Below are positions 49 to 46,801 of a stretch of 64,000 bases of DNA, in pieces. The DNA comes from Calcarisporiella thermophila CBS 279.70. Lineage: Eukaryota > Fungi > Calcarisporiellomycota. A program made the translations under genes and the position numbers. The stretch is taken from the NCBI RefSeq assembly GCF_041956535.1, contig NW_027192226.1, positions 60,259 to 124,258 on the forward strand, in the 5' to 3' direction. The notes under the pieces were generated by a model that was not told the origin of the DNA, did no database searches, and saw nothing but the letters and a program-made list of their open reading frames with translations. Each line of letters begins with the position of its first letter. Position 1 is the first letter of the stretch.

Positions 49-2148
49 CTATGCTGTTGATGAAATGATAGTTAATCTAGTCGTACTTGACGATGAGTTC
101 TTTGGCGATTGTATTAGCATAACCAACACGCTCGTCATATTAAACGCAAAATTATCCGTGACATTAATGGCCGAAAGTGGCTCCAGGCTAACTCTAGGAA
201 TCAAGACTGGAATGAGAGTAGATGGATCACACTGAGGAACTTCAGCAACAGGTGTAGGAGCCGGACAATTCTCAGAGCGTTCTATCAAATTCTCGAGATT
301 TCGGATGAGCATATAGTCGTAATATATCAGAGACTCGTTTTGCAAAAGAGAAAGGATTCTACGCATATTTCTCAGAGCATGTTCACGCTGTCCGCAAATT
401 CCTGATTCAGCTAAGAGAATTTGAATACAAGCACTCGTACTCAGCCCAAATACTGCTATTGAATGCAGCGCAATGCTATCCGGGTCATTTATCACCAGCT
501 CGACTAGATCTACTATAATATTTGCTGATGGCACGCACTCTATAACTGCATCACTGTAGATAAACACAATTGGACTGTCACCTGCTTTCGGGAAGCGGGC
601 ATGGATATAAAGTGTGCTGAGAAAAAGTAGTATTTCTGCCATGTTTAACGGTGGAAGATCTTCTGGAATTTTGTTTATCATCGTTGCAAGCTTGGAAGGC
701 GAGAACGATATCTGGGATGGTGGAGACATAAGAAAATTTTGTGCAGACTCTTCATTATCGGGGTTATATAAGGACTGAAAGCCGGCAGTGGGGGGAAGTT
801 GCAGCCATATTTCTGTCAGAACTTCCGTTAGATATGCACAATTATAGAAGGAGCGGATTGCTTGAGCTTGGTCTTGAAGTGAAGTGAAGTAACCATGTTT
901 CATCTCGAGTTCATAGAGGTACGACTCAGTCTCGGTTTTAACAGGCATTTTCACATAACTAAAGACTAATGCCTTGTCTACCGGCGATCTGATATGAAAA
1001 TAGCTCCATGTAAATGCAATTCGCATTGCCCACCAGATGTTATTACGAAGTTCACGCTCTACAGGATCAAGTTTCTCATTAAAGCCTTCCATGTCCTGCT
1101 CTGGAATTCGCATCACAACTGCCATCTTCCATGCCGTTGCCAGCAACGGGATCCCGCTTTTTGACCGACCGACGCGTGCCAAATCGCATCCCAAGATGAA
1201 TAGTCCCTGCAGTTTAGTAAGAGATGGGCTTTGTGTGATATGATTGAGAAGTGAGAGAGCATATTCCGTGAAAACAGATCCCGGTCTCCCGCTTCTGGTT
1301 TGGTTGAAGAGAGGAATGCCAGAAATCATCAGAGCGGACGAAAATAGGGCGGAGTAGAGAAAAGGATCCACTAGTTGGTTTTGGTAGTTATTAATCATGA
1401 CAGCGCGACTGAGAATATTAGGGAAGGTTGTCAGCTGAAACCACTTATCGATAAGTGTAACTGCTTGGTTATAGGTGATTGACTTGAGGGGATCTTTATG
1501 TCCTAGCGGCATGGTTGTAAAAAGACTGTTGGCGTCCTCTCCATATTGAAACAAGATAGGGAATTTCTTTTCAAGTGTTTCCCCTACATTCAATGCGCTC
1601 AGATTTTCTACGAGAATACCAAGCATTTCGTTGGAAATAATTTTTGGATAAGGATATTGGATTGAATTCATCCGCCGGGACCAATCAATCTCCCATCCAA
1701 GATTAGCTGTGGGATGAGCAGTTCTAATCTATAAAATGAGAACGGCAAAATACATTTGTGTTAGCAACAATGAGAAGAGGCCCAAAATACGTTCTGTATA
1801 TTAACTCACATTCACGTTGGCAAAGGTGGGATAAAGCCTCTCTGCACACATTTGTACTTGTTCGGACATGCGTGCAATTCGCTTTTTACGAACCAGTTCT
1901 CGAGGAGTCATTTTAGCTATTCCATTCTCAGAGAGAATAAAATGACGGGCCTTAGAACGACCCCTTGGCAATTGGACTTTGGGGTATACACATTGGATGC
2001 AGTGTAGCTTGCAGCGAAAACAGCCGGAAATATTACCATCGCATTTTAGCTTCTTCTGACGGCAATAATAGCATGCCTTACGGCTGCGGCAGGGTTTTTG
2101 GTTGAGATGAGGCTGAAAGCTCAAAAGATTGAAGCTGGGGTTAGACAT
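49..2148 (-). CDS. Zn(II)2Cys6 transcription factor with fungal-specific TF (middle homology) domain, array copy 1, ~672 aa, 2 exons (2148-1810, 1728-49)
   Basis: Cluster CYYCRQKKLKCDGNISGCFRCKLHCIQC. Intron 1809-1729 (GTGAGT...GCTAAC...TAG) joins in frame to the ORF containing DPVERELRNNIWW. Confidence 0.9.
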
Positions 2149-2934
2149 GAATAGGCTGCTGAACTGCTTCTCTGTTAGTGTGCCTGAATTGACAGTTGAG
2201 GTGTAACCTAGTATTTATTGATTTGAAAGGGCTCTAGAAGGTATTAGGTTAGGATTCAGGGATGAGTTCAAAATGGAAATTTAATTTCATGTAATGGCAC
2301 AAAATCTGGTCTTCCCCAAGCTGAAACAGAATCTTCTGCGCATCAAAATCAAAGCGCGGCAGTATTGTAGCCATTGCAACACAGAATATTCTTCTATGAG
2401 GAGCATTCTATATATTTGTATACTAAAGCTGTCAAATGACGAAGTTGCACCCCCTAAAAATTCGAATTGACCGCTTGCTAAATCTTCAGATAAGCACTCA
2501 GAGATCTGATTCTGGTTTAGTTTTGCCCGAATATTATTCCCAAAAAATTTTTTTCAATTTCATGCAGAGTAATTTATGAATTGTCAATACCAACTAATAT
2601 CGCAGATAAAGAATATTATCACCTGAAGCGCAAAAAATGGCATATAAATACTTTCAAGTGCTGATAGGCAGCATACATTCAACAATCCTATAATGTCATT
2701 GAACTAAGAGAGCTAGAGCAAAAAGCAGTTGATATATGAAAAGTACAAGTAAGAGCATATGAACACATTACAAATAAACAAAATAGTTACAATGATATAC
2801 AGGTGTAAGGTGGAAGATAAAGAGTTGTATATCTAATTGGTAGTACAAGCAGGATTAGCTGGCATCACCATAAAAATAGGTTCAGATGAATTTGCTCATT
2901 ATAGCCAAGGGGGACATGTTACTAGCTCAATTAT

Positions 2935-5338
2935 TCAAATATTGTAGTTAAAGTTTGAAATTGTGCTGTAAGCATTTTGTCCATATTCAGAATTGGTTAC
3001 ATCTCTCATGGCAGGAGGAATGGTGCCATTAGGATAGAGGGAGAGGCCAGGAGGAAATTGTACCTGTGTATCATGCGCTGCCGTTGACCGCACATTACTT
3101 CCGAAATTATTCTTGGAGAGCGAAATTAATTCTGTGGCTCTCTCTTGTAGCTGGATTGGATCATACCCCTCTAAACTTGTGTCAATGTTTTCAAACCACT
3201 TGACATCTGGATGCGTTGGCAATGAATGTTCGATTGGAATGGAAAAATCGAATAGTGAGGACGGCACAGTTTGACTTAGGTCTAGAGTGGGAATAATAAC
3301 AGCCATTAAAGCTTTTTCTAGTGAATCCTCAAGACCAGTTGTCTCTATTTTCGCTATTGATTCAAGGCTCACATGAGGAATGATAATTGGCTTGTTGGCT
3401 TGTCTGCTAAAATTCTCCTCATTTTCACTTTCAAGCCTTGCAACTTGAACTTGTCGGCTCTCCAAGCGGCCCAGAGCTTCTTCAATGGCACGAATAAGTC
3501 GTCGATTAAATATCACAAGCTGCTTGCATTCCAACAGTTTTAGAGTGCGATGTAAATTTAAAATTGCCTGTTGGCGCTGGTTGCCTGTCCTCGACTCCGC
3601 TATCAAAATGTGAATGCATGCACTTGTATTCAAACCGTAAACCACGAGAGGGTGCAGAATTACGCCATTTAAATCATTGAGAATATTTTCCGCTATATCC
3701 ACAACGGAATCAGCAGGTCCCACACATTCTGCAAGCAAACTTTCCTCCACGATCAAAAGTGGCCCCTCAAAGTTTTTAGGGAAGTGAAGGTGAATTAGCA
3801 GAATGTTGTAGTACAGTAATAGCTCTGCTGCGTTAAGTGGAGCAAGGTCGCTGGGGAGGGCATTTGCCAGCATAGCCAAGTGTGCAGGTAGTGTGGCCAA
3901 GTCTCCCCGGGAAGAGGGCAGTTTTTCACAGACGAGCTCACCCTCCTCCGGATCAAGCAATGAGCGACGGCCCACGTCAGGTGTGATCATGAGCCATATC
4001 TCTGAAAATATAACTGACATATGCACGAAATTATAGAAGGAGCGGATGGCTTGTCCATGTTCAATCATAGTTGTATTGAGACCGTGTGCTTGATCCAACG
4101 CGTAAAGGGCTGACTCGCTTTCATTCTTGACGGGCATATTCACCTTGGCCTCAAAAAAGATCTTGTCGATCCCTGATCCAGCATTGAAATACCCCCATGT
4201 CATAGAAGAGCGCAGCACCCACCACATATTATTGCGCAGCTCACGTTCCACGGGGTCTAGCTGCAAGTTAAAGCACTCGCTATCTTGTTCGTGGATTCGA
4301 AGCTGAAGAGCCATTTTCCATGCCGTGGCCACTAGGGGCATTCCCATTTTTGACTGGCAGAGATAGATCAGATGGCCCCCCAGGATAAATAGACCTTGCA
4401 TTTTGGTGAGCGAGGGCTCGGGTGTCTCCTTCTCAAGCAGTGATAGTGCATATTCGGTGAAGACCGACCCAGGCCGTCTACTTCTGGTTTGGTTATATAT
4501 AGGAATTCCAGACATGTTGAGTGCGGAGGCAAACACAGCCGAATACAATAGGGGATCGTAGTTATTATTGCGAAAATTTCGAGTCATAACAGTGCGATTG
4601 AGAATGGTGGGAAAGGAATGGGTTTGAAACCATGTATTGATAAACAATAGCGCTTGTTCGTATGTAATCGACTTTAGTGGATCTCGGTGCTCAAACACCC
4701 GGTTGGCAAGTTGCCTTTCCTCTTTTCTCACTTGCACCATAGGAAACGTTTTTATGATCTTTTCACCAATGCTCAGAGAGCTTACTTTTTCGATAAGAAT
4801 ACCTAACATATCGTTGCTAAGCTTTTTCATATATGGAGCATGGGTGAATTTCCTTCCGCGGTTCCATGGCATATCCCACCCCAGATTAATGTTAATATCA
4901 GGCGGCAAATCGAGCTATATGGTAAAAGCAGTGAAATAAGCGGTAAAATACTATAATCATCCAAAAAAAATATTTTGCGAGTCTAGCTCTTACCTCAATT
5001 CCAACGATGAGATTCTCATATTTATCGAGGTATTTCATATACCGCTGAAGCAAGTTTTCTTTGAATGACTGACTAATTTGGGACAAAATCGGATTGCTGA
5101 TGTCGAATATTATCTGCTCGTTCTGTTGCAAAAAGCGGCTGCGTGGACGACCTCGGCGGACAATCTGGCTTCCAAATGAGCACGAAATACCGAGCATTTT
5201 ACACCGCGAGCAACCTTCGAGATTTCCATCGCATTTTACCTTCTTTTTGCGACAGCTGCGACATGCCTCGTGGATATGATAGGCATTGTCGTTGAGAGGA
5301 TCATGGATAATCACAACACGCTGCGTGACGGGTGGCAT
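2935..5338 (-). CDS. Zn(II)2Cys6 transcription factor, array copy 2, ~774 aa, 2 exons (5338-4994, 4914-2935)
   Basis: Cluster CRSCRKKKVKCDGNLEGCSRCKMLGISC then RRGRPR. ATG at 5338 (MPPVTQ). Intron 4993-4915 (GTAAGA...TAG) gives an in-frame join (IE|LDLPPD). Confidence 0.88.
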
Positions 5339-6149
5339 GGATACATAAGAATGTTGATAACTAAAGGGAGCTGAAGTGCCCGGAAGAACTGTAATAAATA
5401 GCCAATATGTTACTCTCACAACAAATAGCAACAGCTAAAAGCTTGAGTCTCTATGAGCGGGTTTTATTTTCTCGCTAGGCGCAGATCAAATTTTATATGC
5501 TCCATACCTCCTAACAAGGCAGCTGTTCTCCCAAATAGGTCACGTATGAGGTAAGAGCCTTCTTACAAGTGATAAGCCACATGGGATAAAGCCTATTGTA
5601 GATTCCGGAACAATATCATCTCCATGTTTCAGAGGAGAAAGGAACCCCCGAACTTGAGCACAGATTTGAATGCGCCTACGCTCTCTTGTCTCTACGGGGT
5701 TTTAGTCCAAATCGATCTGATCCTCTCTCCTCTGGAACACGGACTGAAATCCCCTGCTTGAGACATTGCTCTTTTGCTCGACACAAGGACCCCCCATCCT
5801 TAAGCAAGCCCAAATTGAGCTTATAGCAATGGCGAGGATTGGACCCTTCGAATTGATTTGTCTATCCTCACTAACCTCAAACGTGCCACAAAGTTTACAT
5901 AACTTTATTGACTAGTCCCGTGCCTCTTCCGCATTTCTTGTGTATTTCTATCATGACCCAGCATGGTACGAATGCACAAGAAATGCAGAAGAGTCTGAAG
6001 AGTCTGAAGTAAAACATTACAGTGCAACTAATATTAGCAGCAGATATATACATCAGTTGCAATATATAATAAACACACATTACAATTACGGAGCTCAACC
6101 AAAGGAATTCAACTAGGATTCAATATGGCTGGATTCCCTGGGATGGGCT

Positions 6150-8560
6150 TTACAATACAACATCAGGTTTAGGTTTCTCGAAAAATATATTGAATGCTAA
6201 GCTGTCAATGGGTGCAGAAGAAGGCTCCGCGTTATGCTCGAAAGTGTCGAATTTATCTCCAGCCATCTGATTTTCGGTCTGAATTGTTTGGGTAGTATCT
6301 GAAGAGTATGTGGGTGATTCCAGAAATGAAGCGAAAGAATCTTCCAAAATACTTTCGACAGCAAGTTTGGGAGCCATATCAGAGGGATTGGGCGATAAGT
6401 CGCTGTCCGAAAAGTAGGGGGAACACGAGCTCAATATATCTTCGATCGTCTCCTGTAGGTTGTCTAGTGACGAACCCGGTGAATTAGCACAAGCGGGAAG
6501 TGTCGAAAAATGGGATGTCGCAGAGGGTGCAGCACCAGATTTACTCACGACCATAACCAGCAAAGTGGGGAGTTCTTCTGCTGAGCCGCTCTCATATTTT
6601 CTTTCCAAAAGGGATATCGACTCGAGACTTGCACACGGGACAACGACTGGAACGATTATTCGGTCGTCGTGGTTGCTTAATCCTGATAGCGAAGTGGATA
6701 ATGAAGGAATCTCATATTTCTCTGCCCGAGAAAGAAAACTTTCGATCGTGCGGATGAGTCTGAGCGCTGTGTGCCCCAAGTATCTGCACACTAGTAGTGA
6801 GTGTATCTCTCTTAGTTTCAAAAGTGCCGCCTCCCGCCGCTCTCTCGCACCTGACTCTGCTGAGAGAATATAAACACATACACTTGTATTCAGTCCAAAC
6901 AATACAAGTGGATAAAGCGCAGAGTGTTGAGAGTCCGAAAGAGCAACCTTTGTTGAATCTAGGACTATATCCGCAGACGACAGGCATTCTGTAATGGCAT
7001 TGACTTCAATGAAGAGAAGTAGATTGCTGTCTACCTTTGGAAACTGGGAATGGATGCTGAGAATGTTGAGGTAGAGGATGATTTCGATCGTATCTGTCAA
7101 GCTCAAATCCTCTGGAATGGATTCCATTGCCTCCCTCATCTGGGCAGGCAAGGATGCCAAGTATTGTTGCGTAGGAATCTCTCCCCCATCAGGCTCGAAA
7201 CAGGGCAGATCCATCAAACAGAATGTTCGCTTGGGACTTATTCGGACCCAGATGTCAGACATGATTGCTGTCAAGAAGGCGAGATTGTAGAAATCTCGAA
7301 TAGCTTGAGCATGCTCCTTTAGCTGCATAACATTCCCATGTTTCAAATCCAGGGAGTAGAGCACAGAATCATTCGCGTTTTTGACGGGCAGTTTCACGTT
7401 CTGCATAACACAATGGACGGAAAATCTCGCCCCAATATTAAAGTATCCCCAAAGGAATGAAGCACGCATTACCCACCAAATGTTATTGCGAAGTTCACGT
7501 TCTACAGGGTCGAGCGGCTGATCAAAACCATCGGTGTCCTGTTCGTGAATCTGCAGGTCAAGCATCATTTTTGAGATCAGAGCTGACAAAGTGATCGACT
7601 TTTTGCCTCGGAAAGAATCCGTCATATGAGAACTGAGAAGCATCATGCCTTGCAACTTCGTTAAAGAAGGTTCTGGGGTTTCGCGCTCCAGCAAAGACAT
7701 TGCATATTCAAAGAAAACAGATCCTGGTGTTCCTCTTTTGGTTTGATTATAGACGGGATTTCCTATTCGCTCCAGTACCATACCGAACACGACCGAATAG
7801 AGCAAGGGATCGTACCGTTTTTCGCGGTAATTCTCTAGCATGAGGGTGCGATTGAGCATGGTAGGAAACATCGATATATGAAACCACTGGTTGATAAGCA
7901 AAACTCCTTGATCATATGGGATGGATTCTAAGGGATTTTTATAATGCGATAGACTATCCTTGCATACCACACCCACATCTTCCGCCGCATAAGAAAGCGG
8001 GAACTTCTTTAAAACCTTCTCCCCTATGTTCAATGCGCTTATCTTTTCAACAAGAATAGCAAGTGCATCGTAGATCAAAATTTTGTTCAATGGGAATGGC
8101 GGAAGCTGCATTCTCCTACTATCCCTCACGTTGGCCAATACAACACTCTCTGACACATGGGTTATCTGAAAAGATATAAAAAAAATGAGTTTAGCAATAC
8201 AATTCGTACTTGAAATCCCAAGCAGACAATCACATTAGCTTGATCTTCCATAATTCTAAGTTTATCAAATAGTCTCTGAAATTCCTCCATCATGTTTCCC
8301 TGCATTGTCACTCGCAGTAGTACAGGATGTCCCACATCAAAGAGGATCTTCTCATATTGTTGTAGGAAACGACTGCGGGGTCTTCCTCGGCGAATTTTTT
8401 CACTCTCAAAGACGCATTGGTGGCCAAGCCGTTTGCATCGCAAACAACCATTCGGTTCTCCATCGCACTTTAGCTTTCTTCGACGGCAGGCTTGACACGC
8501 CTTTCGAGCTGAACCTTTAGTTTCAACACCGGACCTCCAGACAATTAATTTGGGTGTCAT
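6150..8560 (-). CDS. Zn(II)2Cys6 transcription factor, array copy 3, ~788 aa, 2 exons (8560-8210, 8165-6150)
   Basis: Cluster CQACRRRKLKCDGEPNGCLRCKRLGHQC. A 44-nt intron 8209-8166 (GTACGA...GCTAA...CAG) gives FQ|ITHVSE in frame. Acidic Ser-rich C-terminus. Confidence 0.87.
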
Positions 8561-8793
8561 CAATGTATTGACTATGACTAGCTAAGAATACGTGGTGTTG
8601 GATTGCTACTGAATACTACCATTCAATGCACGGACATGTAAGAGATAAACACCTATATATATATCACACTACTTCGCCCTCTATTTCTATATTAATGGGA
8701 GTTAAATAGGATCCGATCACCAGAAATTAAACGGGCTGAGTTGAATCTCGGTGTTTTTGGATCCACTTTTTTGATGGAGATTCAAGTAAAACA

Positions 8794-8821
8794 ATGGTTT
8801 CATGGCCGGAATTCATTCCCG
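8794..8821. promoter_or_regulatory. Putative conserved upstream element of copy 3 (TGGTTT followed by CGG-N9-CCG)
   Basis: CGG 8807-8809, AATTCATTC, CCG 8819-8821, ~250 bp upstream of the ATG. The same spacing recurs upstream of copy 4 and the pseudogene. Confidence 0.4.
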
Positions 8822-10230
8822 GCGTCCTAGGGTCGTAGCACAGGGTTTTCTATCCTCCAGCAGTAGCATCCCTGCTTTTCCCTAATGCAGTCTTGACTGG
8901 TCTTATGAAGAGCATCCTGCACGCCATGGACCCTATTGGCAACTAAAGCTAATTTGTATCTGACTAGTGGGGTATATATTAAAATCGGCCTTGGCCCCTT
9001 AGTTTTAATTTCTCGACAATAACCGTGCACGTACATGACTAAATATTGTGAAAGGTGTGTGATACCGTGGTTAAGGAGTAGAATAATGACTTTATCTTGC
9101 AATAGCGAAGAAAATCTTAGAACCATGGCCTAGTTCTTAAATCACATTATGATGCGCAAGAGAATAAAAATCTAGATTCGAAGCGTTCGAGTCAAACGCT
9201 CCAGGCAAAGCGCATCGGACACTTCTTCTCGAGTGCCGGCATGCCCCACTTCTATTGAATAGGTACTGCCTCATTGAACTGATGTAAGCACCCGTTAATG
9301 CACACGTATTACTGAGCGGACTTGGATATTCTGCATGTATAGGCCAGTGAGCTCATTTGGCTTAGTTTGATAAACTACAAAAAAAGGACTGCCACTTAAA
9401 GGAAGTTCAGCTGATCACGACTACATATTTTATTTTATTAAATAAATTGAAGCAAGAATACAACATGAAAAACCTTCTTTGTGCAGTATTACATTTTGAA
9501 TACTATGTGGCGTAATAAAATTACTACTTAGCGGTTAAATATTCAAATTTACATATTGTACAGCAAATAAGCATTGTAATCGAAATCTCATTTCGAAACT
9601 CTTGTTCGTCTACAATTCTACAGTATTTGAGGCCCTCATGGTGGAAATTGATAAATTAATTTCGAGCAGTTTACAGGTGTATTCGAGATGCACATTAGAA
9701 TTATCAAGTATTATTAATAACCAATTGCTTTGTTGGAAGTGAGTGTGATATGGTGGGCAACCTCAATTATCGCTAGTAATTGATATCAGAAATTGCATAT
9801 TTTATTCCAGGTGTTAGACTAAAATATGGTAGGCTTAATTTTTCAAACTAAGACACTTTTAAACCATTTGTAGTCTAATTTGAAAATAATTTGCATGCGC
9901 AAAGTTTGATTAAATTCTCAATTACAAGTTTATAAAAGTTTATTCTAGCATCAAACTACTTTTCTATCGAGTTTAAATCAGTATCTAAAAGTATTTACAT
10001 TTATGAGAATGTGCAAAACATTGCTTAAGATGGAAATATGAACATAGTTAAATTTAATGTATGCAAATAGAGTGAAAAGGTCTATTCGGAATGTATTCTA
10101 GTATGAAAGAGCCCCCCCTTGGAAGTTGAAATGCTGAAAGGTGGAAAAGTACACGAGGTCGAAGCGGTTAACGTTGTCGGTAGTATTTGAAAGTGATTGG
10201 AATTAACTATATCTGGCGATAACTCAGAGA

Positions 10231-12353
10231 TTACATCACTGGCCGAAACAGAGCAGAGCACTGTTCAGTAATTTCTCCATCGTCTCGCGTATCCAATAGC
10301 ACTCCCACATACTTGGTGAGTAGTAAATTAGACACCGCTTCAGTACTATATTGGTCTTCATTTTTCACTACCATAACAAGCAGGGTGGAAGACTGGGATA
10401 CTGTCGAATTCAGATAATCATTGTCGAATAAAGGTGTTGTGAGAGCACGCGGGATAGCAACTGCCACAATTTTCCTATTATTATCATGCAATGGTGATGT
10501 CGTTAACATATGGCCTCCACTTCCTCGAGAAAGGAAATTCTCGATGGTACGGATGAGCTCTAGAGTTATATTTCCGAAATGCCTGCATTCAAGTAGTTTC
10601 TGTATCTCGGTGAGTTTGAATATTGCTTCTTCCCGCTGCTCAACTGAACCTGATTCTGCTAAAAGGATGTATACGCTTATGCTCGTATTCAATCCGAATA
10701 AAACAATTGGATCTATTGAAAAAACTCTTGGGTCTTTGACTGCAATCTTCGCCACATCCACTATCATGTTCGCTGAATTTCGGCACTCTTCGACAGCTCT
10801 GTCTTCGAGAAATAAAAGTAGATCCTTCTCCTTCTTAGGAAATTGAGAATGAATGGCGATAATATTGAGGCACAGGAGAAGCTCCGCAGCATGAATGGGT
10901 GACAGCCCACTGGAGATCGAGGCCATCATAGTTGTTAGCCTAGGGGGTAGAGTTGCCAGGGTCTTTTGCAGATGTGAAGGTTCACTACAATCATACTCCG
11001 TGTTTACCGGATTCCTCGAATTCAATAATGAGAGCTTATGGTGTGGCACGATTTGTATCCAGATTTCAGTCATAATGTCTGTCATGAAGGCACAATTATA
11101 GAAATCTCGTATTGCTTGCGCATGCTCGAGTTGGTTCATAATATATCCATGCTTTACATCCAGAGCATAAAGAGACGACTCATTCTCGTTTTTAACAGGC
11201 AGTTTCACAGTGCTCAGAGCAAAATATTTGTTAATTCCTGAACCGCAACGAAAATTTGCCCGTGACCAAATGCAACGCATCGCCCACCAGATGTTAGTGC
11301 GCAACTCTCTATCCACGGGATCAAGTCTCTGATCGAATTGATCGTTATCCTGTTCGTGGATCCGTAAGTCTAACGACATTTTGGCAGCCATCGCCATCAA
11401 TGAAATACCAGTTTTGGATCGATTGGTAATAACCATGTGCGAGCTAAGGACGAAAAGCGCTTGCATCTTGATGAGTGACGGGGCTGTAGTCTCACACTCC
11501 AGGAGTGACAAAGCGTATGTAATGAAATCTGACCCTATCCGGGTTTTTTTTGTCTGACTTTTGATTGTGATCCCTTTCCTCTCCAGGACTGAACCAAAAA
11601 TAGCTGAATAGAGAAGAAAGTCGTACTTTTGTCTGCGATAGTTATCAAACATGATAGTGCGATTTAGCACAGTGCTAAATGGATTGGTCTTAAACCATTC
11701 GCTGATGAGCTGGACTCCTTGATCGTATGGAATGTCTTGCAGCGGGTTTTCCAGCTGAGGTGGTGAAAAGCTAAAATCACATTTGTCCTCTTCATGTTTA
11801 GATAGGAAATATGCTTTTTGCACCTTCTCACCGAAGCATAGCGAGCTTATCTTTTCAATGAGAATTGCGAGCATGTCGTTGGTATAAACTTTGATTAATG
11901 GTATATTTAGTTTATATGCGAAATGATTTTCTATACTGTCCGACACAGACGTTATCTAATGAATTTAAAAATACGCGTTATTATTTGCCAACTCAATGTT
12001 GATCTTCGTGATTTGTATGCATTTACCACGATTATCTCTCGCATCTGGTTGAGTCTCCTATAGAGCAATTGAAATTGCTCCATCAAGCAACCTCGATTTT
12101 TTACGCAAAGCAAGGTCGGGATACTGATATCAAAATGGATGTTTTCGTATTGCTGTAGAAAGAGACTGCGGGGTCGACCCCTGCGAATAGTGGTGTTGTC
12201 AAAAATACAGTTGATTCCGAGTCTTTTGCAGCGCTGACAAACTTTTGAATCCCCATCGCACCTCAACTTTTTTTTACGACAGGATTGACATGACCTTCGA
12301 ATAAGCTTCCTCGTCCAAGAGGAATCCTCTAATGTGATTAAACTGCGAGGCAT
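10231..12353 (-). CDS. Zn(II)2Cys6 transcription factor, array copy 4, ~683 aa, 2 exons (12353-12027, 11955-10231)
   Basis: Cluster CQSCRKKKLRCDGDSKVCQRCKRLGINC then RRGRPR. Intron 12026-11956 (GTAAAT...TAG) gives IV|ITSVSD in frame. Confidence 0.88.
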
Positions 12354-12581
12354 ATTGCGGGCACTTTACACATTCGTCAATGCCCTCTGTCTTTTTCTAT
12401 GAAAGTATATCCCACTCAATACACCAATATAAATGAGGCAGACTGAATATATGAACCTGTTTATATTGGTTTGAGATAGCTCATGCTAAACTGAAACCAA
12501 AAAGCCATTCACATGTATATCGATATTAAAAAGCGGATAGGACAAATGATTTTGCGTAACGTTCTCAAAAATGATTATTCT

Positions 12582-12606
12582 TGGTTTCGGAGCCATTGCC
12601 CGAATT
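12582..12606. promoter_or_regulatory. Putative conserved upstream element of copy 4 (TGGTTT-CGG-N9-CCG)
   Basis: TGGTTTCGGAGCCATTGCCCGAATT, ~235 bp upstream of the ATG. Confidence 0.4.
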
Positions 12607-12720
12607 CGCATTATATTTTCTAGCAATTTGCTAAAATGATCTTAGTTCTATGAAAGCCATTGAGATGAGAACAGCGACTGATTCCTCGATCTTCTCAATA
12701 TATCGCGTATATAGTAGAGA

Positions 12721-12770
12721 AAACTTATGAAATCTAGAATACTATATAGTATTCTAGATTTCATAAGTTT
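12721..12770. repeat. Perfect 50-bp palindrome (no spacer)
   Basis: AAACTTATGAAATCTAGAATACTATATAGTATTCTAGATTTCATAAGTTT equals its own reverse complement. The flanking bases do not extend it. Confidence 0.97.
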
Positions 12771-12899
12771 GAAGCAGTTTCACCAAACGGAATATCCATA
12801 TTCAGAGAAAAACGCACGAATAATCAATTAGATAATTCAATAGTTACCAGACCCAAGTAAACACGCTGCTTCTCAGTCTTAACTTTTTTTGAGCTGGTT

Positions 12900-13770
12900 T
12901 ACTTTCGTTTAATCCTATATCCACGTTCACGGGGAGTCATATCCAAATAGATAAGAATGTTTTTGGAGAAACCGTGAATAAAAGGGTCTCTTTTGGATAC
13001 CCTTGAAGAAGTATCTGATATCTTTGACTTTGTAGCAGAAATAGCTCGGAGTATGTAATAAACGTATCGGTTTAGTTCATCTCACTTGACCTTCGCATTC
13101 TGCCTGTCGGTTCGAAATCTATCCCTTAGGTATTGAAGTAACTTGGATAAACCACTCAGAAGTTGTTAAGATGTGCTACTAATACAATCTGTTTTATAGA
13201 AGTTATAGTTGTTAGATCGCGGCAATATGTGTGCTTTGATATATCTTCATTACCTAGATGCTTTTCTATCAAAATTGAGATCATCGTTTATAAAAATGCA
13301 CCCATAAAAACGTGCAAAACATTACTAGAAATAGTAAGAGGGCTATAATTAATATCAGGTGAATGCAAATGAAGCTAAACGCTCAAAAAGCATTCTAGTA
13401 TTAGTTAGTCCTCGTTGAAAGGTGTAATACTTATTGCTAAACAATCAAAATATATTGGAAATAATTTTTAAACCATTTTATGAATACATGTTATAGCTTG
13501 AATGTATTTACCTCTGCATATTATTAAAGCTTGTAATCCATTTGAAATTGCTCGATCAAAGAACTCCGATCTCTTATGCTGAACAAGCTCGAAGTGTTGA
13601 TATCAATATGAAAGTAACCTAAACGTTTTAGAAATCCGTTGCAAATTCGAACTTTGCGAATCGTGGCACTATCAAAAATGAATTCGATATCGAGTCGATT
13701 GCATTGCTGGCAGTTACCCGAATCGTCATAACTTTTTTTTACGACAGGACTGAAATGACCCACGGATATA
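12900..13770 (-). pseudogene. Decayed Zn2Cys6 array copy 5, closest to copy 4 (boundaries approximate)
   Basis: IRGSFQSCRKKKL* then a frameshift to CQQCNRLDIEFIFDSATIRK...LIEQFQ, aligning to copy 4 IRRSCQSCRKKKL...CQRCKRLGINCIFDNTTIRR...LMEQFQ. Exon-2 remnants in the expected order: ISILIEK (~13270), SEWF (13160-13149), FITYS (~13055). Confidence 0.8.
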
Positions 13771-14581
13771 TCTCGCCTTGGCGAAATTGTTAATGAGATA
13801 TAAGTTTTTTTAAAATGCCGAATGTATTCTGGATATAGATTGCTTTTATCGCTACTGAAGCCTGAAAATGGGCACCATTTAAATACAAATGCGTGCTCCC
13901 TAGAAATACATAATTAAATAAATATATCGAGTTACATAAATTGAGAACCCAATCATGAAAAGTGACCGATTTAATGACATATTAAGATGAACTAGTGATG
14001 CAATTTTGGAATCTAGAGTAATATTTATGGGTTTCGGATGCAATGCCCAATTTTGCATAAACTTTCCGAAATATGTCAACTGTAGACACAGAAAGAGTCC
14101 AGAAAAGTGATCATCTGAATCAAATAGCTTCCATATTAAATTTATAGTTGTCCATTGAGTAATTTATGTTCAAGGGAATAAAAGCATCTTAAAACCCATA
14201 CTTGTGTTAACTCTCAACTAAGCTGCTAACATTTAAACATTTCGCCATGTGATACTTAAACTTTTGCTATTTACTGATTCGTTGATATAAAAGTGAATGC
14301 TAACTATACTATCATATATTATAAAAATAAAATGTAAATAGGAAACCATGAAAAATGAATATATACAAATATACAATTGTATAACAAATATTCTGCATAT
14401 AATCATAATAATATAATTACTATTAAAGTGATAGAAATATGATTAATTGTCTTGATGCAGGCAATAATAATGAGGGTAAATTTTCGGAGCAGTGAGTACA
14501 TATATCGAAATCTTCGTTATTCGAAAGGCAGTGTGAGTGCGCTCCAATCACAGTCCAATTAAAATGCTATGACTTTTCCTA

Positions 14582-16682
14582 TCAATAATGCAACGAACTT
14601 GTATGCTGCAGAGGAAATGGAAGTAATGCGGTTCTTGGTGGATACTGACTTGGCTTGTGTACAACCATGACAAGAAGAGTATTATGATGGATTGCGGTCT
14701 CGCTTAAACATTCCAGTGCAGTTATGGAGCAGAGACTTACACAAGGAATAACGACTGGCAATAATGTTTGACTGGATTGCTCACTCGAGTTCGAACCAGA
14801 AAACAAGAACTCTTCTCTACGCTCAGTTTGACAGAGGAATTGCTCAATCATTCGGATGAGTTTAAGTGCAGGGTACCCGAAAAACCCGGACTCCAATAAT
14901 TGAAGTATTGATTCTAGTTGTCTGACCGCTTCTCGACGCTCTTCCTCCATTCCTGATTCCGCCACAAGGACATAGATGCATACGCTTGTATTCAAACTAA
15001 ATAATAAAATCGGATGGAGAGAAGAATTGCATGTGTTTGAAAGAATCGCTTTCGCCATATCCACTATTGCATTTGCCAATGACATACATTCTAGTATGGT
15101 CTGAATCTCGAGGAAAAGCAGTAGGTTGTCCTCTGTCTTAGGAAAGTGGGAATGTATGCTTATGGTGTTGAGGTAGAGCATGAGCTCCGCTCTACTGATA
15201 AATGGCAAGTCGCTAGGAATTAAGTCCACTGTCTCTCTCATTATCGCAGGCATGGTTCCTAAATATTGTTGCAGAGGTAAAATCTTGCAGCCTTCAGATG
15301 TATCTTGTTCCTTCTCCCACAAGCAAAACTTAGGGGTTGAATTAATCTGCATCCAGATCCCAGCCATAATGACCGTTATAAATGCGTAATTATAGAAATC
15401 ACGAATTGCTTGTGCATGCTCTTGTAGTCCCATGATATTCCCCTGTTTCTCTTCTAGTGCATAAATTGCCGATTCCTTCTCAGACATGACAGGCAGCTTC
15501 ACTTTCTCGGCGATTAGACGAGTATTCACCCTCGATCCGAAGTGGAAATAAGCCCAAGTGTCTAAATTGCGTATTAACCACCAAACGTTATTGCGAAGCT
15601 CTTGCTCCACTGGATCGAGTTTTTGATCAAATTGTTCACTATCCTGCTCGTGAATCCTCAGATCGAATGCCATTTTGATCGCCATTGACACCAGAGCAAT
15701 CCCTCTTTTTGACTGAAGGTTTTCGGTCGTATGAATCCCAAGGAGAAGTAAGGCTTGGAGTTTAGTTAGTGAGGGTTCGAGAGTCTCTTGCTCAAGAAGT
15801 GACAGTGCATATTCAATAAACACCGATCCTGGCTTTCTGCTGGCTGTCTGGTTGTAAATAGGTGATTCTAATTTCCCCAAAACGGTTCCAAAAACAACTG
15901 AGTAGAGTAATGGGTCGTATTGCTGTTTTTGATAATTCTCGAGCATTATGGTGCGGCTTAGCACAACTGAATTTGGCATTACATGAAACCATTGATTAAT
16001 GAGCACAAGTCCTTGATCGTGTGGAAGAGAATGCAGTGGGTTGGTGTGCTGCAAAATGAAGCTTTGATCATAGCTATTCACATCCTCCGTCTGGTGGGAT
16101 AGAGGGAATTTTTTTCGCAACTTTTCGCCTGAACTCAGCGCACTGGTCCTCTCAATATAGATGGCCAGTAGATCATGCGTTAATATCTTGTTTACAGGGA
16201 GTCGAGATTCACACAAGCCAACTGCTTTGGAAACTATTGTGCTGATATTTGCATGTTCTACTGTGGGGATAATCTAACATATGGAGAGTATTCGAGTAAG
16301 GATATATCCTGATTTTAGAGTTAAAATTCTCATTTACCCCAATCATATCTTTTATGCCACAAAGCCTTCCAAACATCCACTGAAACTGCTCCAACAGACT
16401 TCCCTTCCTCCTTGTGCTTGTCAAGGTGGGATGATTAGCGATAAAGAGAATTTGCTCGTGTTGCTGCAAAAAATCACTGCGAGGACGTCCTCTACGTACT
16501 GTAAATTCTCTCTGCTCGAACCAGCATCGGATGCCAAGCATATTGCAACGTAAACAGCCGTCGAAGTTACCATCACATTTAATTTTCTTATTACGGCACG
16601 CATGGCATGCCCTAGTTGATCTTTGCTTCTTAATAATAGGTGGATTCGGCGAAAAGGGTACAAAAGTTTTGACTGGTGGCAT
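14582..16682 (-). CDS. Zn(II)2Cys6 transcription factor, array copy 6, ~678 aa, 2 exons (16682-16338, 16273-14582)
   Basis: Cluster CHACRNKKIKCDGNFDGCLRCNMLGIRC then RRGRPR. Intron 16337-16274 (GTAAAT...TAG) gives MIG|IIPTVE in frame. Confidence 0.88.
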
Positions 16683-18578
16683 TTTTATATTTTACAGTTA
16701 TAGTTCAATGCTCATACGTTCTATGAGTATAGCTCTTGATGCCAAAAATGAAGATAGTATATAAAGTAAAGAATAAGCTATAGAACAACAGGGATGAATG
16801 TAAATTTAAACAGATCTTTCAAATAAATATGTCAAAAAAATATTCTTTTAAGGTGTCTTTTATTAAGATATTCGAAACACTGGATTTATATCAGTTTCGG
16901 ATAGGTATATATTTTATGACTGAACTTTGCCAAACGCTAAACCTAACACAAGACCATCCTCAGCCGAATGCCCTGATTGGAATTTAAGGACCCTAAGATC
17001 ACAAGTACTATTGGAGTTTCATTTTGTGCCAATATATGTTAAATTAAAACTGACACCGGAGTGAAATGGCAAGTTATGTCTTGTTTATGCCCGGCTTCCA
17101 TTAATAACTACAGAGGCAATTTAGTTTTAATAGAATTCTTTTGTCTTATAAATCTTTTTTCCAAGGATCTGGGTTGAATTGGACCAATTAGCAAAATATA
17201 GCATGGAGACTGAGAAAGACAAAACGGGTTTAACTATATCGCCTTATTAATACTCGGTAAATAGCACGGCTATCTGTACTGTAAAGTAAATCTTGATTTA
17301 TAAACGACCAAACGGAAACCCATGGCTAAATAATAAATGGTTTATCCGGCAATAAGGTGGCTATTGAAATCAACCCTTCACGTTGATGCAAAATCCAAAT
17401 GGTAAATCTTAAATGATACACCAGGTATTATAGTTACGAAAAATGTGAAGAGTTTAACTGCGACTATTTAATAAACGCGATTTCAATGAAAGACATTAAA
17501 AACATTTGCCCTGCATTCCAAAAAGGGGAAAATTTTCCCTGTCAAATCGCCAACATGTTCAATATACACTCTATAACAACTGATAAGACCGTTAAAGGAG
17601 AGTGAAAATTGCGCCTTTCAAAAGGCGGCACATTGGATGTTATAGAATTACGAGTAATGAGAAGAGGGGATTATTGTTACGTTATTCTCTTCAGACCATC
17701 GTAAAAACGCTGAGGAACTTATGAAATATCTTAAAGATTTTTACAATTAAGGTATGTTGATTGTTAGCATGAGCTATATCCTACAACTAAACTGATAATT
17801 TTGACCTTAGGTAACCATTTTTATGTTTGTATATCGAGCTATGCGCTTGGAGTTTGCATTGAAGTAAATAATCCGTTTAGAGATGAAGGGAATTAAATAA
17901 CGTTTTCAGATTGAATTCGAAATATATCCATGAGTGCGGCTGGTAGACGATACCACTATAAACATATGTGTGAATCCCTCAACGGTATCCATATTAAAGT
18001 TACATATATACATGAATGAGAATTATTGAAGGTGGGATCATGCTACTTCTTATGGTGTTGTCTATACCAATTGAAATAGTGGAGAACTTATTGCATTTTA
18101 ATGCTACAAAAATCAGATAAAGATACTTTTTGTGGAAACGACACATCACATCAAGTGCAATGCACCATATTATGCAAGTTTACGTGAAAAAACGTGTGTT
18201 GTTGATGTAGCTGAAATAAGATATAAGAAGTAATAGTTAGCAAAGGAGAGAGTCCCTTCTAAAAAACTTGCAATGGCTTTGGATTTAAAGATCTAATGGC
18301 CACTGTTTAAAAATGATCTAAAAAAACTTCAACGTTAATATACTAACCTAAGTTCCTGTTAATAATTTTTCTTTGCAACTTACTGTAAAATCGAGTCCCG
18401 TAAAATTAAATCAAATGTATGGTTTTCTTCGTTCATTTCGATTTATTAAATGCTTAAAATTTGCAAAAGAATATAGATAACAATTTCAATAAATGCGTAT
18501 AAATTTACAACCTGTCACAATTTGCGACATAATGATGAAACACAAAATGAAAATATATATGCTATGAGAATATTGTTA

Positions 18579-21049
18579 TTAAGCTCCAACAAATGCGTTA
18601 AAATGTTCTGATGGAGCTGAGCACTTCACTAGTTCATTAACAAATTCGGTGTCGCACTCGGCCTGTATCTCCATATTACCAGGCACATTTCCATCCCAGA
18701 CACTAAACACATCTTCTGCCATGACTAAATCCGTAGATAGTGGAGAAGCATGCGATGAAGGTTCGGGGGAGGATTTGGATGAGAAAGTGCTCGCTATTAT
18801 TTCATGCAATGGTATAATGAACGAAAGGTCTGATGACGAGAGCTGAGGCATTTCCGTCGCAAATATATCCGCTACCGAAGGCTCTGGATCAAGAAGCTCG
18901 GCAGATGTAGATGAAGAATTAAGTTTATCAAGGATGGGTAGAGCCAATTCTTTATGTGCACCCAGATCCTGCTGCAGGTGCTGCTGATCAGACATGGCAA
19001 GTGGCAAGGATGTAAAAAATGATGGTTCAGGCGAAAACATGGAGGGAGGCTGCTCGTTATTGGATACCAGCATCGCCAACAGTGTATCTTTTCCCTGTCC
19101 TGTTTCATCCGAATCTCCTGCTCGTGCTAGTGACCTGAGACTTACGCGGGGAATTTCAGCTGGCACCAAGATTTGACGATCCCCATTCATACTTGGTGAG
19201 GTTACCCCTTGGTGCTTTTCTGCGTGGGCGACGAAATCTTCAAGTTTTCGCATCATCCTCAAGTCATAGCATACTGGTCGCGTGCTCGCCAGTAATTCCA
19301 TTATATCCCTTAAGTTACGGATTGCCTTAACTTGCTCCTCATTTGTCCCTATTTGTGCAACAAGAGAGTATACTGAGATGCATGTGTTCAATCCGAAAAC
19401 GACGATCGAGTGAAGCATCTGGTCGTCGCACACAGACTCTGCCAGATCCATAATTTTGTCCGCTGATTTTATACACTCCATTAATGCATTGGTTTGGATG
19501 AACAAGGTCCCACTATCGTCAGTTGTTTGGAAGAGGGAATGGATGATGAGAACATTGAGGTATAAGAGCAATTCGGCGGACTCTGTCGAAGCTGGTTCAG
19601 CAGAAATGGATTTTTCCAATGTGGATATGGTAGAATGCAAAGATAACAGATAATGACGAACGGAGCGTGGCCCACTACATGCTGGCTCGGATTTATCGGG
19701 AACAAATAAGGACTGAAATTCGGTGGGCGGTGCGATCTGGGTCCAGATGTCTGATAGTATATTTGTAAGGAAAGCGGAATTATAGAAGGACCGAATTGCC
19801 TGCGCAGTTTCTTGCAACTGTATAACGTGTCCGTGACATTTATCGAGTGCGTATAACACTGATTCTCTGTAGTCCTTGACCGGCAGTTTGATAGTGGATA
19901 AAAACATGTCGTGATCTAATCTCGATCGAATATGCAAATACCCCCACGTGTATGATATACGCATTGCCCACCAGAGGTTCGTTCTGAGTTCTCGCTCTAC
20001 GGGAATGAGAACTTGATCAAAAGTTTCGCTATCCTGCTCTGGTATGCGTAGTTCTGACGCCATTTTCCATGCTGTTGCCAACAATGGGATTCCCATTTTC
20101 GATTGACCTCGGTAAATAAGATGGCAGCCCATAATGAATACTCCTTGTAGCTTTGTGAGCGAGACACTGGACTCTTGGCGTTCAAGAAGGAATAACGCAT
20201 ACTCAGTGAATTCTGAACCAGGCAGCCCACTCTTAGTTTGGTCAAATACAGGCAATCCCATTAAGCTCAGTGCCGAGGCAAAAAGAGTTGAATATAGGAA
20301 CGAGTCGTAACGTTGTTCACGGTAGTTTTGTAACACGATCGTACGGTTGAGGATGGGCGAGAATGGGTGGAGCTTGAACCATGCGTTAATAAGCATTATA
20401 GCCTGATCGTAACTGAGCGACTGGAATGGATTTTTCGGTTCAGGCGGAATCTCTGGTGCAATGTCATTCTTGGCTTCGAATGAATTAACGTAAGGAAAAT
20501 TTTTCATGACGCTCGTTCCTTTGCTCAATGTATTCATTTTCTCGATAATAATAGCTAACATGTCGCTCGTCATCATTTTGTTTCCTGGCGAGTGTGTGAA
20601 TTGTACACCTTTAGTCCATTTCCAAGGTCCAGTTTCACGCTTATTAAAACATATTGGCTTGATCTAAGAGGAAGCAGAAAGTTAGACACTGTATTTCGAG
20701 TCATTGTGCCAAATTCTTTGCATACCCCTAGGCTACTGATATAAGGATCCAGCTTTTGTACAATCATCCAAACTTGTCCACATAGTCCTGATCGGAGGCT
20801 GTTTTGAGGGTGATGAGTATTGAATAGCAAATGCTCGTTTTGGTTGGTTAAACGACGCGGAGGACGACCTCTGCGAGCATTGTTGTCCACGAAAAGGCAT
20901 TGGATATTCAATATCTTACACCTCGAACATCCTTCGAGATTTCCGTCGCATTTGACCTTCTTTTGCCGGCAGGCAAGGCATGCTTTACGGCATATTTTAT
21001 CATTTAAGATGTCGTAGAGTATAAAGGAGCGTTTTGTAATGGGAGGCAT
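18579..21049 (-). CDS. Zn(II)2Cys6 transcription factor, array copy 7, ~802 aa, 2 exons (21049-20726, 20663-18579)
   Basis: Cluster CLACRQKKVKCDGNLEGCSRCKILNIQC then RRGRPP. Intron 20725-20664 (GTATGC...CTAAC...TAG). The spliced WKWTKGVQFTHSP matches copy 2 PWNRGRKFTHAP. Confidence 0.9.
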
Positions 21050-24952: not shown

Positions 24953-27569
<2,617 letters not shown>

Positions 27570-31228: not shown

Positions 31229-32955
31229 TAGAGTCAAAAAACAAAATGTAGTAATTACATTTATTGGAAGTATCCAGTACATTCATTACAAAGATTGATC
31301 AGATAGAACGAGATAAATGCTAAGAGAGCAATAGGCTACACGAAGATATTATCGCAATGCGGAGAATTAATATGACTGCGCCTCGATACGATATATAAGC
31401 GGCATTTTTTTGTTTACATCTCTAACAATCCTCTTCCTTTCTTTCCTAGTTATCTTTTCCTTTTTTCGCGTTTTTTTTAATTTGGTGAGTATCCATTTAT
31501 CAGTTTATAAATGCTGCTGTTTTACTTATATGATGAGACCTTTTACTCTTTCACCTTGGAGAACTGAATACTCCCTGTTGATAATTGTAAAAGCTAATAG
31601 GAATTCCTCGTTTCTGATTCTTTTTTTTTTGACCAATATTTTCTCAATATTCTTGAACTAATCGAGTATTTAATTTTATTAGTGCATTGTTCGCGTTATA
31701 ATTTTCTCGATGAATTAAGGTATATTTATATAATTTTAAATATATCTTTTGGCAGGAGGACGATAATTTCCATACACCAATTCCTGACTGATATGGAAGA
31801 GGGATACAATTAACATGCACTACCAACCGACTGCAATTATTTTTTAGCAGCTTAATTCATATTTTATTATTTCGCCTAATCTTATTATAAATAGTAGGTT
31901 TGTTGCCCATCACTTATCACATTCGTATGCATTTCTTCGGTAAGCATCTTTCATATTTTTACTCTATTTTTTGCGTGATGATATTATGTTGTATTATGCC
32001 AGTTCTGCTTCTGAATATAATTGAAGAGAGCGCAACATTTCGCATTTCATTCTGATATTTAAATTTTATTATATAACATTGATTATTGATGTGACATCGA
32101 CTAATCATATATAACTGGATATAGGATAAATACATACTATTTATTGCCATCCTAGAGACTCAACTTACTTAAGGTAATTGTTGCTATTTTAATAAACGAA
32201 ATGATGCTCTTGATCAAATCCGTGTTTCACCTGATTTGCTTCTTTAACGGAGCATTGATTACAAAATGACCTTGATCCCTGATCTTCAACATATTTTTTT
32301 GAATTTTACCTCGTTATACCAAGTTTTTACGACTTTCTAACTTGCCGCTCTGCTATATTTTAGATTTTGCGCGAGGGGAGGATTTCTGAATTATCAAGGT
32401 GAGTAGCAGAAAATGCTACAAACGAATTTGAAAATGATGAGAAATTCGTTTTATCCATTCTATGATTTTGGAGAGAAATGTTGCGCTGAGAAGACGAGTG
32501 AGTTGAGAGCGTTTTGCTTTCAACTTTTTCAAGCTTCTCTGTCGTGTTTTCCCTCTGAGGATCGAATTGTGGCTCTGATATTCCGAAATCTTCGGATTAA
32601 ATCAATTAAATTGGGAACCTATTTCTGACAAATGTATTCATATGTAGGTGAGTCCGTACTTTATACCATTTAATTTTTTCATTCGAGTACACAACAATAA
32701 TAAAATTGGTCTAGCACCTATATATATTCTAAATCTTAATTTTCCTTTAGAATTTTTATTATTTATGTAAGATAATATTAAGGAAAAACTTCTCAGGGTT
32801 TTTCAATCACAAAGACTGAAGAAACTGCATCAAACAGCTATGCATAGTTCAAAATTAAACAACTTTATAATTAGATTAAATAAAGTGACTATTTTAGGAC
32901 TGTCTATTCAATTACCATTTTATTATTTTTTGAAATCATAATCGGAAAAGATAGA

Positions 32956-33756: not shown

Positions 33757-34427
33757 TTATATCTTTCCCACTTCCCCTTCATCAAAACACCAATCCCCAC
33801 TTTTTCCTCCCGTTTTTCTTGTCACGCGTATCCCATCGATCACCATCTTTTTTCCCACAGCCTTGCACATGTCAAACACCGTTACCAGCCCAATACTTAC
33901 GGCCGTAATCGCCTCCATTTCTACTCCAGTCTTGCCTTCACATTCAACCGTCGCTTCGCACTCCACCGTCTGCTCCGCTTCATCTAGCCAGAGTTTGACG
34001 TCCACCTTCGACAATTGTAGAGGATGGCAGAGAGGAACCAAATTAGATGTTTGTTTCGCAGCCTGAATGCCAGCTATCTGCGCAACTGTTAGGACATCTC
34101 CTTTTTTTATATGTTGATCACGGATAAGCCCAAAAGCTGTCGGCCCAACATGGATTCGTCCACGGGCAGTGGCACTGCGGTGAGTGGATATTTTCCCAGA
34201 AACATTCACCATAGTAGCCCGTCCTTGAGCGTCTGTGTGTGTGAGTTTTGGCTCTCCTGAAACTCCTTCAGGCTGACCAAATCTTGGTGCTTGTTTATCT
34301 CTAGTTGAGTAAAAGCGGGCTACACCTTGCGGGTTCGTTGATTGCCTCTCAATAAAAAGGGGGATGACGCCTGATCTCGACCACCTCGCTCGGGGTTTTG
34401 ATTGTATAGGTGTCCCCAATTGCGTTT
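33757..34427 (-). CDS. MOCS1: Cyclic pyranopterin monophosphate synthase (MoaC/MOCS1B/Cnx3) exon, predicted to be expressed by splicing from the upstream moaA
   Basis: LTHTDAQGRATMVNV, KKGDVLTVAQIAGIQAAK, LVPLCHPL, GKTGVEMEA, VFDMCKAV, KTGGKSG. No in-frame ATG before the LTH motif. Acceptor AG at 34429-34428. Confidence 0.92.
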
Positions 34428-46487: not shown

Positions 46488-46801
46488 AATACTACTATTA
46501 TTGAGATCGAACAACTTAGTTGATGGAAATACACCGGGCCTATCCCAATACTTAATATCACGATTTCAGTTAGCAAGTCACAAAGAAAAATTCAAAACGG
46601 AACAGAATGAGGCGCGTAATGCATAAGGCAGCAGAGTTTGCCAATCTAAAAAGATAAAGCTATGATATAGCCGCAGTGTGCGAAAGATATTAAGTTTAAT
46701 ATAATCAATAAAATAGGATAAAGCAAAATTCATTAGATATAAATTATGTTTGACAATAATTTTTTTTTCAATGCATTCAATTGTATTATATATTCTCCCT
46801 T

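Follow-up and report, generated by a model that had tools for sequence, protein, structure and literature searches.

A tandem array of Zn2Cys6 transcription factor paralogs in Calcarisporiella thermophila and the apparently species-restricted family to which it belongs

The early-diverging thermophilic fungus Calcarisporiella thermophila (Mucoromycota) carries a dense array of genes for Zn2Cys6 transcription factors, most of which lies in the 64,000-nucleotide stretch of DNA analysed here and referred to as the window (G000:C36:60259-124258). On the minus strand, at window positions 49-21049, six pairs of open reading frames (ORFs) constitute six intact two-exon genes, VTP21DRAFT_8056 to VTP21DRAFT_8061, which encode a zinc cluster followed by a middle homology region. 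The whole array, which extends to the left of the window, spans about 25 kb and consists of seven intact genes and a single relic, all of them arranged head to tail. It is probably an ancient array that arose by local tandem duplication, with seven functional paralogs and one decayed exon, and its genes belong to a Zn2Cys6 and middle-homology-region family that appears to be confined to this species. Seven of the at least 22 loci of this family are thus adjacent in a 28-Mb genome, which is far beyond chance.

In each pair, a Zn_clus ORF of about 110 codons is followed downstream by an ORF of 540-668 codons, and the six large ORFs are mutually 38-50% identical at the amino-acid level (tblastn E-values of 1e-105 to 1e-161). 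Numbered from left to right, with g0 for the copy outside of the window, the first gene, g1 (VTP21DRAFT_8056, 672 amino acids (aa), 49..2148, minus strand, as are all the others), has an exon 1 at 1810-2148, which encodes the zinc cluster and the linker, an intron of 81 nucleotides (nt) at 1729-1809 and an exon 2 at 49-1728 that includes the stop codon. It is followed by g2 (VTP21DRAFT_8057, 774 aa, 2935..5338), with exon 1 at 4994-5338, a 79-nt intron at 4915-4993 and exon 2 at 2935-4914, and by g3 (VTP21DRAFT_8058, 780 aa, 6150..8560), with exon 1 at 8234-8560, a 68-nt intron at 8166-8233 and exon 2 at 6150-8165. At the other end of the array are g5 (VTP21DRAFT_8060, 678 aa, 14582..16682; exon 1 at 16338-16682, 64-nt intron at 16274-16337, exon 2 at 14582-16273) and g6 (VTP21DRAFT_8061, P0011, 802 aa, 18579..21049; exon 1 at 20726-21049, 62-nt intron at 20664-20725, exon 2 at 18579-20663). 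The deposited proteins of these five genes map exactly onto the DNA with GT..AG introns, and the lengths of their first exons (339, 345, 327, 345 and 324 nt, respectively) place all five introns in phase 0. Between them lies g4, which from the order of the tags is presumably VTP21DRAFT_8059 (10231..12353), with exon 1 at 12027-12353 and exon 2 at 10231-11955. Its putative intron at 11956-12026 (GTAAAT..CATTAG, 71 nt, phase 0) is placed by homology to the other copies; the exons were searched and aligned separately. A phase-0 intron in all six intact copies, as described in the original prediction, is therefore read directly from deposited proteins in five cases and from homology in the sixth.

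The suspicion that the array runs past the left edge of the window proved right, by exactly one further intact copy. This gene, g0 (VTP21DRAFT_8055, 816 aa, G000:C36:56003-58527), is encoded on the same strand, has a 74-nt phase-0 intron and forms the left end of the array, beyond which only unrelated plus-strand ORFs follow. The right end is g6, after which come an unassigned 449-codon ORF and an SNF1-like kinase gene. Between the copies, the ORF listing contains no ORF of 100 codons or more, except for antisense ORFs inside the genes, and the deposited locus tags 8055-8061 are consecutive, which means that the annotators, too, found no further gene inside the array. The ORF pairs, the Pfam matches, the tblastn searches and the tags together bear out the earlier description of six intact minus-strand genes and one pseudogene without any other gene between them, with the refinement that the pseudogene is a relic of exon 1 only.

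This relic of a DNA-binding exon sits between g4 and g5 (13530..13773, minus strand). The closest copy is g4, whose exon 1 it matches with a tblastn E-value of 2.6e-13 and 66% nucleotide identity. It carries an in-frame stop codon and a frameshift, other residues take the place of cysteines 1 and 6, and cysteine 3 is apparently lost as well. A second-exon remnant was not found downstream of it, and what remains is a solo, decayed DNA-binding exon only. A seventh full-length copy inside the window was considered and rejected, as a tblastn search up to an E-value of 10 gave nothing but this exon 1 relic.

The other members of the family were located by a six-frame search of the whole genome. It returned 21 or more additional second-exon matches, almost all of them with a Zn-cluster exon just upstream, so that the family, with at least 22 loci, provides about a third of the Zn_clus matches of this genome (22 of at least 65). 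Its restriction to C. thermophila, as far as databases show, rests on an exhaustive HMMER search of 1.84 billion cluster representatives with a profile of the second exon. The top 19 matches score at least 216 bits and mostly cover the whole profile, a few being fragments; every one of them that was looked up or mapped onto the genome is from C. thermophila. The next matches, from Tuber, Kalaharituber, Sporodiniella, Apophysomyces and Cunninghamella, reach at most 120 bits and cover approximately positions 27-400 of the profile only.

Elsewhere in the genome, grouped members of the family are loose: three are found within 50 kb on contig C20 and two within 20 kb on contig C25. The trio on C20 (C20:2055-51245; L016, L017 and L020) lies near the contig end and is made up of two recent duplicates, with tree branches of 0.07 and 0.11, and a third, intact copy. 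The copies C20_27k and C20_50k have a TGA at conserved Trp codons, a different one in each (NIWW and TTWSY), C8_743k is interrupted by a TAG and changes frame, and C2_1541k consists of fragments only. The signs of birth-and-death turnover that had been proposed are thus present, in the relic inside the array and in the nonsense codons at conserved Trp positions of copies elsewhere. A further copy (C22:2859-7504; L033) is split by 4646 N, possibly an assembly gap; a 1826-codon ORF fused to it is an artefact of the same run of N, which gives rise to false ORFs of about 1800 codons in either strand. One dispersed copy (C6:509993-511974; L011) is annotated as a 514-aa protein (P0012) that lacks the Zn-cluster exon, although one that looks intact is present upstream. 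In the knuckle of this copy, CRQDKEIC, acidic residues have replaced basic ones at two positions. This copy, at C6:510k, was also considered as a pseudogene and rejected, because its "internal" TGA is the natural stop codon right behind the C-terminal motif and the second exon is intact.

In a tree with eight outside relatives as outgroup, the family is monophyletic, with a Shimodaira-Hasegawa-like approximate likelihood ratio test (SH-aLRT) support of 99 and a long stem. The neighbours g3, g4 and g5 are united in a clade at 100/99, inside which g3 and g5 pair at 99/97. The remaining array genes g0, g1, g2 and g6 group with this clade and with two dispersed copies (C11:876k and C6:510k) at an SH-aLRT of 92, without internal resolution, and in the approximately unbiased (AU) test, monophyly of the seven array genes remains acceptable (p = 0.386). 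Of the expectation that the paralogs form a clade, the part that stands concerns g3/g4/g5 and the family as a whole; monophyly of the seven is neither shown nor rejected. Local duplication is supported by the shared orientation of the genes, by the phase-0 intron at the same site and by the relic, which lies next to g4 and is closest to it. Judged from the tree, such duplication is shown for some of the genes and fits the whole array as well, which one lineage may have left. The intergenic regions have no detectable DNA similarity to each other, except for the relic, which indicates that the promoters have diverged completely.

The zinc cluster encoded by the first exon has the spacing C-X2-C-X6-C-X6-C-X2-C-X6-C in all seven array genes, with invariant cysteine columns. 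The Pfam family Zn_clus (PF00172) is defined by six cysteines in the arrangement C-X2-C-X6-C-X5-12-C-X2-C-X6-8-C, and all copies score above its cut-off (28-38 bits versus 21 bits). Over the zinc cluster, the first-exon profile aligns without gaps with the solved domains of Lac9, Ppr1 and Gal4. The knuckle CR[EQKRN][KR]K[LVI][KR]C, which is present in seven of seven copies, corresponds column for column to CRLKKLKC, CRLKKIKC and CRKKKWKC of Gal4, Ppr1 and Lac9, respectively. In solved complexes, the basic residues of the knuckle (R-x-K-K-x-K) read CGG, and the choice of the site by Zn2Cys6 proteins is set by the linker and the dimerisation segment. The pattern CR[QKRN][KR]K[LVI][KR]CDG, from which overlapping target sites of the copies had been deduced, does fit the six copies in the window; the deduction is not supported, since a CRxKKxKC knuckle is generic to Gal4, Ppr1 and Lac9 and says nothing on overlapping target sites. 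Behind the cluster, exon 1 ends in a 60-residue segment with a semi-conserved LxEQFQxxxxKL, and the linker/dimerisation segment is only about 19% identical between copies.

The second exon scores 25.6-40.7 bits with Fungal_trans (PF04082; gathering score of 23 bits) in g2, g4, g5 and g6. A sequence search of the middle region against solved structures gave no match at E-values up to 1. For g3 exon 2, residues 1-560 were modelled with AlphaFold from 41 aligned sequences (pLDDT 84, pTM 0.87), and the model predicts one all-helical domain and a small C-terminal sheet formed from the family-specific motifs PVVIP..SL and LLVMVV. The best structural match to this model is Cep3 of the yeast CBF3 kinetochore complex (PDB 2QUQ, 2VEQ, 6GYS and others), which accounts for all of the ten best solved matches (Foldseek probability 0.97-1.0, best E-value 5e-3) and aligns over 351-379 residues with a VIA Z-score of 11.2-12.9 and a root mean square deviation of 8-9 Å. 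Cep3 resembles the array proteins in having an N-terminal zinc cluster (the first-exon profile matches 6p7v_B), but it differs from them in sequence and geometry (identity of 8-12%, TM about 0.3) and in being a single-copy kinetochore protein and not a transcription factor. As far as the model goes, the match is one of common fold class only; for the fold class it is supportive, not decisive.

How these segments have diverged was followed with Nei-Gojobori counts on codon alignments. In every segment, pS is at least 0.75, which is saturation, so dN/dS is undefined and only dN per segment can be used, and the duplications must be ancient. The zinc cluster is 62% identical between copies (dN 0.28), and the core of the second exon (alignment columns 100-250) is 51-61% identical (dN 0.35); the remainder of the helical domain follows with 38-45% identity (dN 0.53), and the N-terminal leader, the linker end and the C-terminal tail with about 20% (dN about 1.0). 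These values contradict the claim of the original prediction that a similar recognition subregion is combined with a strongly diverged regulatory domain, as divergence per segment is not concentrated in the middle region (0.35 in its core versus 0.28 in the zinc cluster) and it is the N-terminus, the end of the linker and the tails that evolve fastest.

The same values bear on the idea of a sensor bank, according to which similar DNA-binding domains act on overlapping targets and diversified middle regions sense different ligands or signals. Many diverged copies, gene death in the family, the restriction of the family to one lineage with about a third of the zinc-cluster genes of the genome, and a middle region that outside its core is only 38-45% identical are all in line with it. 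However, the middle core is about as conserved as the zinc cluster, the fastest evolution is found at the linker end, the N-terminus and the tails, and the knuckle is generic to Gal4, Ppr1 and Lac9 while the segment that sets the spacing is the least conserved part of exon 1. Moreover, all duplications in the array are ancient, as judged from the saturated pS, with no ongoing rapid turnover seen inside it. With nothing specific in its favour, the sensor bank is an unlikely explanation.

The copies could also be decaying or redundant duplicates without a present function, as the relic in the array and several broken copies elsewhere might suggest. This is very improbable, because all seven frames, of 672-816 codons, are open despite synonymous saturation, dN is three to four times lower in the zinc cluster and the middle core than in the tails, and none of the seven has lost any of its six cysteines or the splice sites of its intron. 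That the frames stay open at saturating divergence, with these cysteines and splice sites retained, indicates strongly, if indirectly, that every copy is functional and selectively maintained.

An old, locally generated array of working paralogs is the reading for which a mechanism is proposed here. By analogy with the class, the proteins would dimerise and recognise CGG-type half-sites through the product of exon 1, which comprises a Gal4-like zinc cluster, a linker and a short segment of helix, and the linker/dimerisation segment would set the spacing of the sites and the choice of partner. Exon 2 would provide a Cep3-like helical domain of about 530 residues that controls activity or partner binding. 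Behind the LLVMVV motif, the proteins end in tails of two kinds: those of g0, g2, g3 and g6 are 118-167 aa long, acidic and rich in Ser, Thr and Pro (118 aa in g2, 131 aa in g3, 161 aa in g6), and those of g1, g4 and g5 measure 20-44 aa (20, 44 and 25 aa, respectively). The long acidic tail is likely an activation region and, where present, would activate transcription. The copies would then differ in site spacing or partners, in output strength and in expression, and would not act as graded ligand sensors. The likeliest outcome of the duplications is ordinary sub- or neo-functionalisation, since it is the linker end, the N-terminal leader, the tails and the promoters that differ most.

The two kinds of tail also invite another interpretation, a combinatorial dimer network in which the long-tailed g0, g2, g3 and g6 are activators, the short-tailed g1, g4 and g5 pair or compete with them as dampers, and the array operates as one regulatory module. 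Dimerisation is known for Zn2Cys6 factors and for Cep3, whose dimers in CBF3 give the best structural matches, and the split between acidic tails of 118-167 aa and tails of 20-44 aa is clear, with both kinds included in the close, adjacent trio g3/g4/g5. Nonetheless, a dimerisation segment that is about 19% identical between copies argues against promiscuous pairing, no promoter motif is common to the copies, and tail length alone is no proof of activator or repressor status, so that this network is quite unlikely. It is similarly doubtful that the array and the rest of the family form a self-contained combinatorial module, in which long- and short-tailed copies would pair or compete via their diverged dimerisation segments and Cep3-like domains. 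If this were true, a new layer of signal integration would have been created by a burst of Zn2Cys6 duplication in a thermophilic fungus of an early-diverging lineage, without connection to the well-known expansion in ascomycetes.

Several points weigh against the proposed array of functional, locally duplicated regulators. The deep branches among g0, g1, g2 and g6 are poorly supported, and on the sequence data a single in-situ origin of all seven genes is not demonstrated. Fungal_trans scores 22.1 bits in g1, just below the cut-off, and gives no match in g3 at an E-value of 0.01 or better. All six large ORFs are mutually homologous with E-values below 1e-100. The Z-scores of 12-13 obtained with Cep3 are within the range that helical proteins reach by arrangement alone. 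In the upstream regions of the seven genes, no CGG/CCG pair with a spacing of 0-20 is common to three or more, and the lack of a common CGG-N-CCG motif means that there is no hint of auto- or cross-regulation. DNA binding as a dimer, and with it the putative targets, is assigned from class membership.

Compared to known systems, the array proteins are closest in layout to Gal4, Lac9 and Ppr1 (PF00172 and PF04082), with which they share the cysteine spacing, the CRxKKxKC knuckle and the succession of a basic stretch with linker and a large helical domain with Fungal_trans matches. They differ from them in having the motif RRGRPR behind the cluster, in lacking outside matches beyond about profile position 400, and in a conserved C-terminal strand pair (PVVIP..SL and LLVMVV) that, in the model, packs on the helical domain.

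A member of the closest outside clade is found in Cunninghamella echinulata (MU611948.1; L031, 7911-16626), also of the Mucoromycota, where three paralogous Zn_clus genes lie head to tail on the same strand. Their proteins have 866, 861 and 737 aa; one pair is 75% identical and the others are roughly 37-50% identical, so that the duplication behind that pair must be much younger than any in the Calcarisporiella array. Unlike the array genes, Cunninghamella P0026 has its zinc cluster and middle region uninterrupted by an intron. In Sporodiniella and Apophysomyces, the relatives are single genes and not in tandem. Small tandem sets such as that of Cunninghamella are thus present in the phylum, and the array, with its seven genes, represents a large case and no new phenomenon.

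More generally, Zn2Cys6 genes had been taken to be usually dispersed, and this agrees with what a study of Aspergillus nidulans states: dispersed duplication is proposed there as one main cause of the expansion of the class, and duplication in tandem is apparently not the principal mechanism (PMC8396895). The A. nidulans groups have expanded by duplication with occasional pseudogenes, as has happened here (PMC8396895); in C. thermophila, by contrast, a third of one family sits in one dense array. Early-diverging fungi are characterised, as discussed in two studies, by fewer Zn2Cys6 factors than Ascomycota, where the class is a hallmark expansion (PMC5415576; PMC8396895).

The array is not a new kind of system, and the lineage-restricted family is its most notable aspect. 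A single family supplies about one third of the zinc-cluster genes of a thermophile of the Mucoromycota, has no close relative among 1.84 billion cluster representatives, and has about one third of its own members in one array. The array therefore offers a clean, small natural system in which to follow how duplicated zinc-cluster regulators partition DNA sites, partners and activation strength.

The remainder of the window contains genes of other kinds. The SNF1/AMPK-like kinase gene lies about 4 kb to the right of the array, at 24953-27499 on the minus strand, in which 26978-27499 matches Pkinase and 24953-25432 the C-terminal domain AdenylateSensor. Cat8 and Sip4, two zinc-cluster factors of yeast, are under the control of Snf1; the position of the SNF1-like gene near the array may be a coincidence. 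At 31970-32058 on the plus strand, there is a match to a box C/D snoRNA (Rfam snR61/Z1/Z11) of 46.7 bits, against a gathering score of 45 bits. From 33757 to 63507, the window holds ordinary housekeeping genes, among them those for MoaC (33757-34419), a triose-phosphate/nucleotide-sugar transporter (36526-37927), a WAPL-like protein (43368-46514) and a poly(A)-binding protein (46802-49032). The ORF pair of the latter, of 572 and 171 aa, was considered as a member of the zinc-cluster family and rejected on account of its RRM and MLLE domains. The last of the housekeeping genes, at 59307-63507, encodes a P-type ATPase, and GC content there rises to about 0.50.

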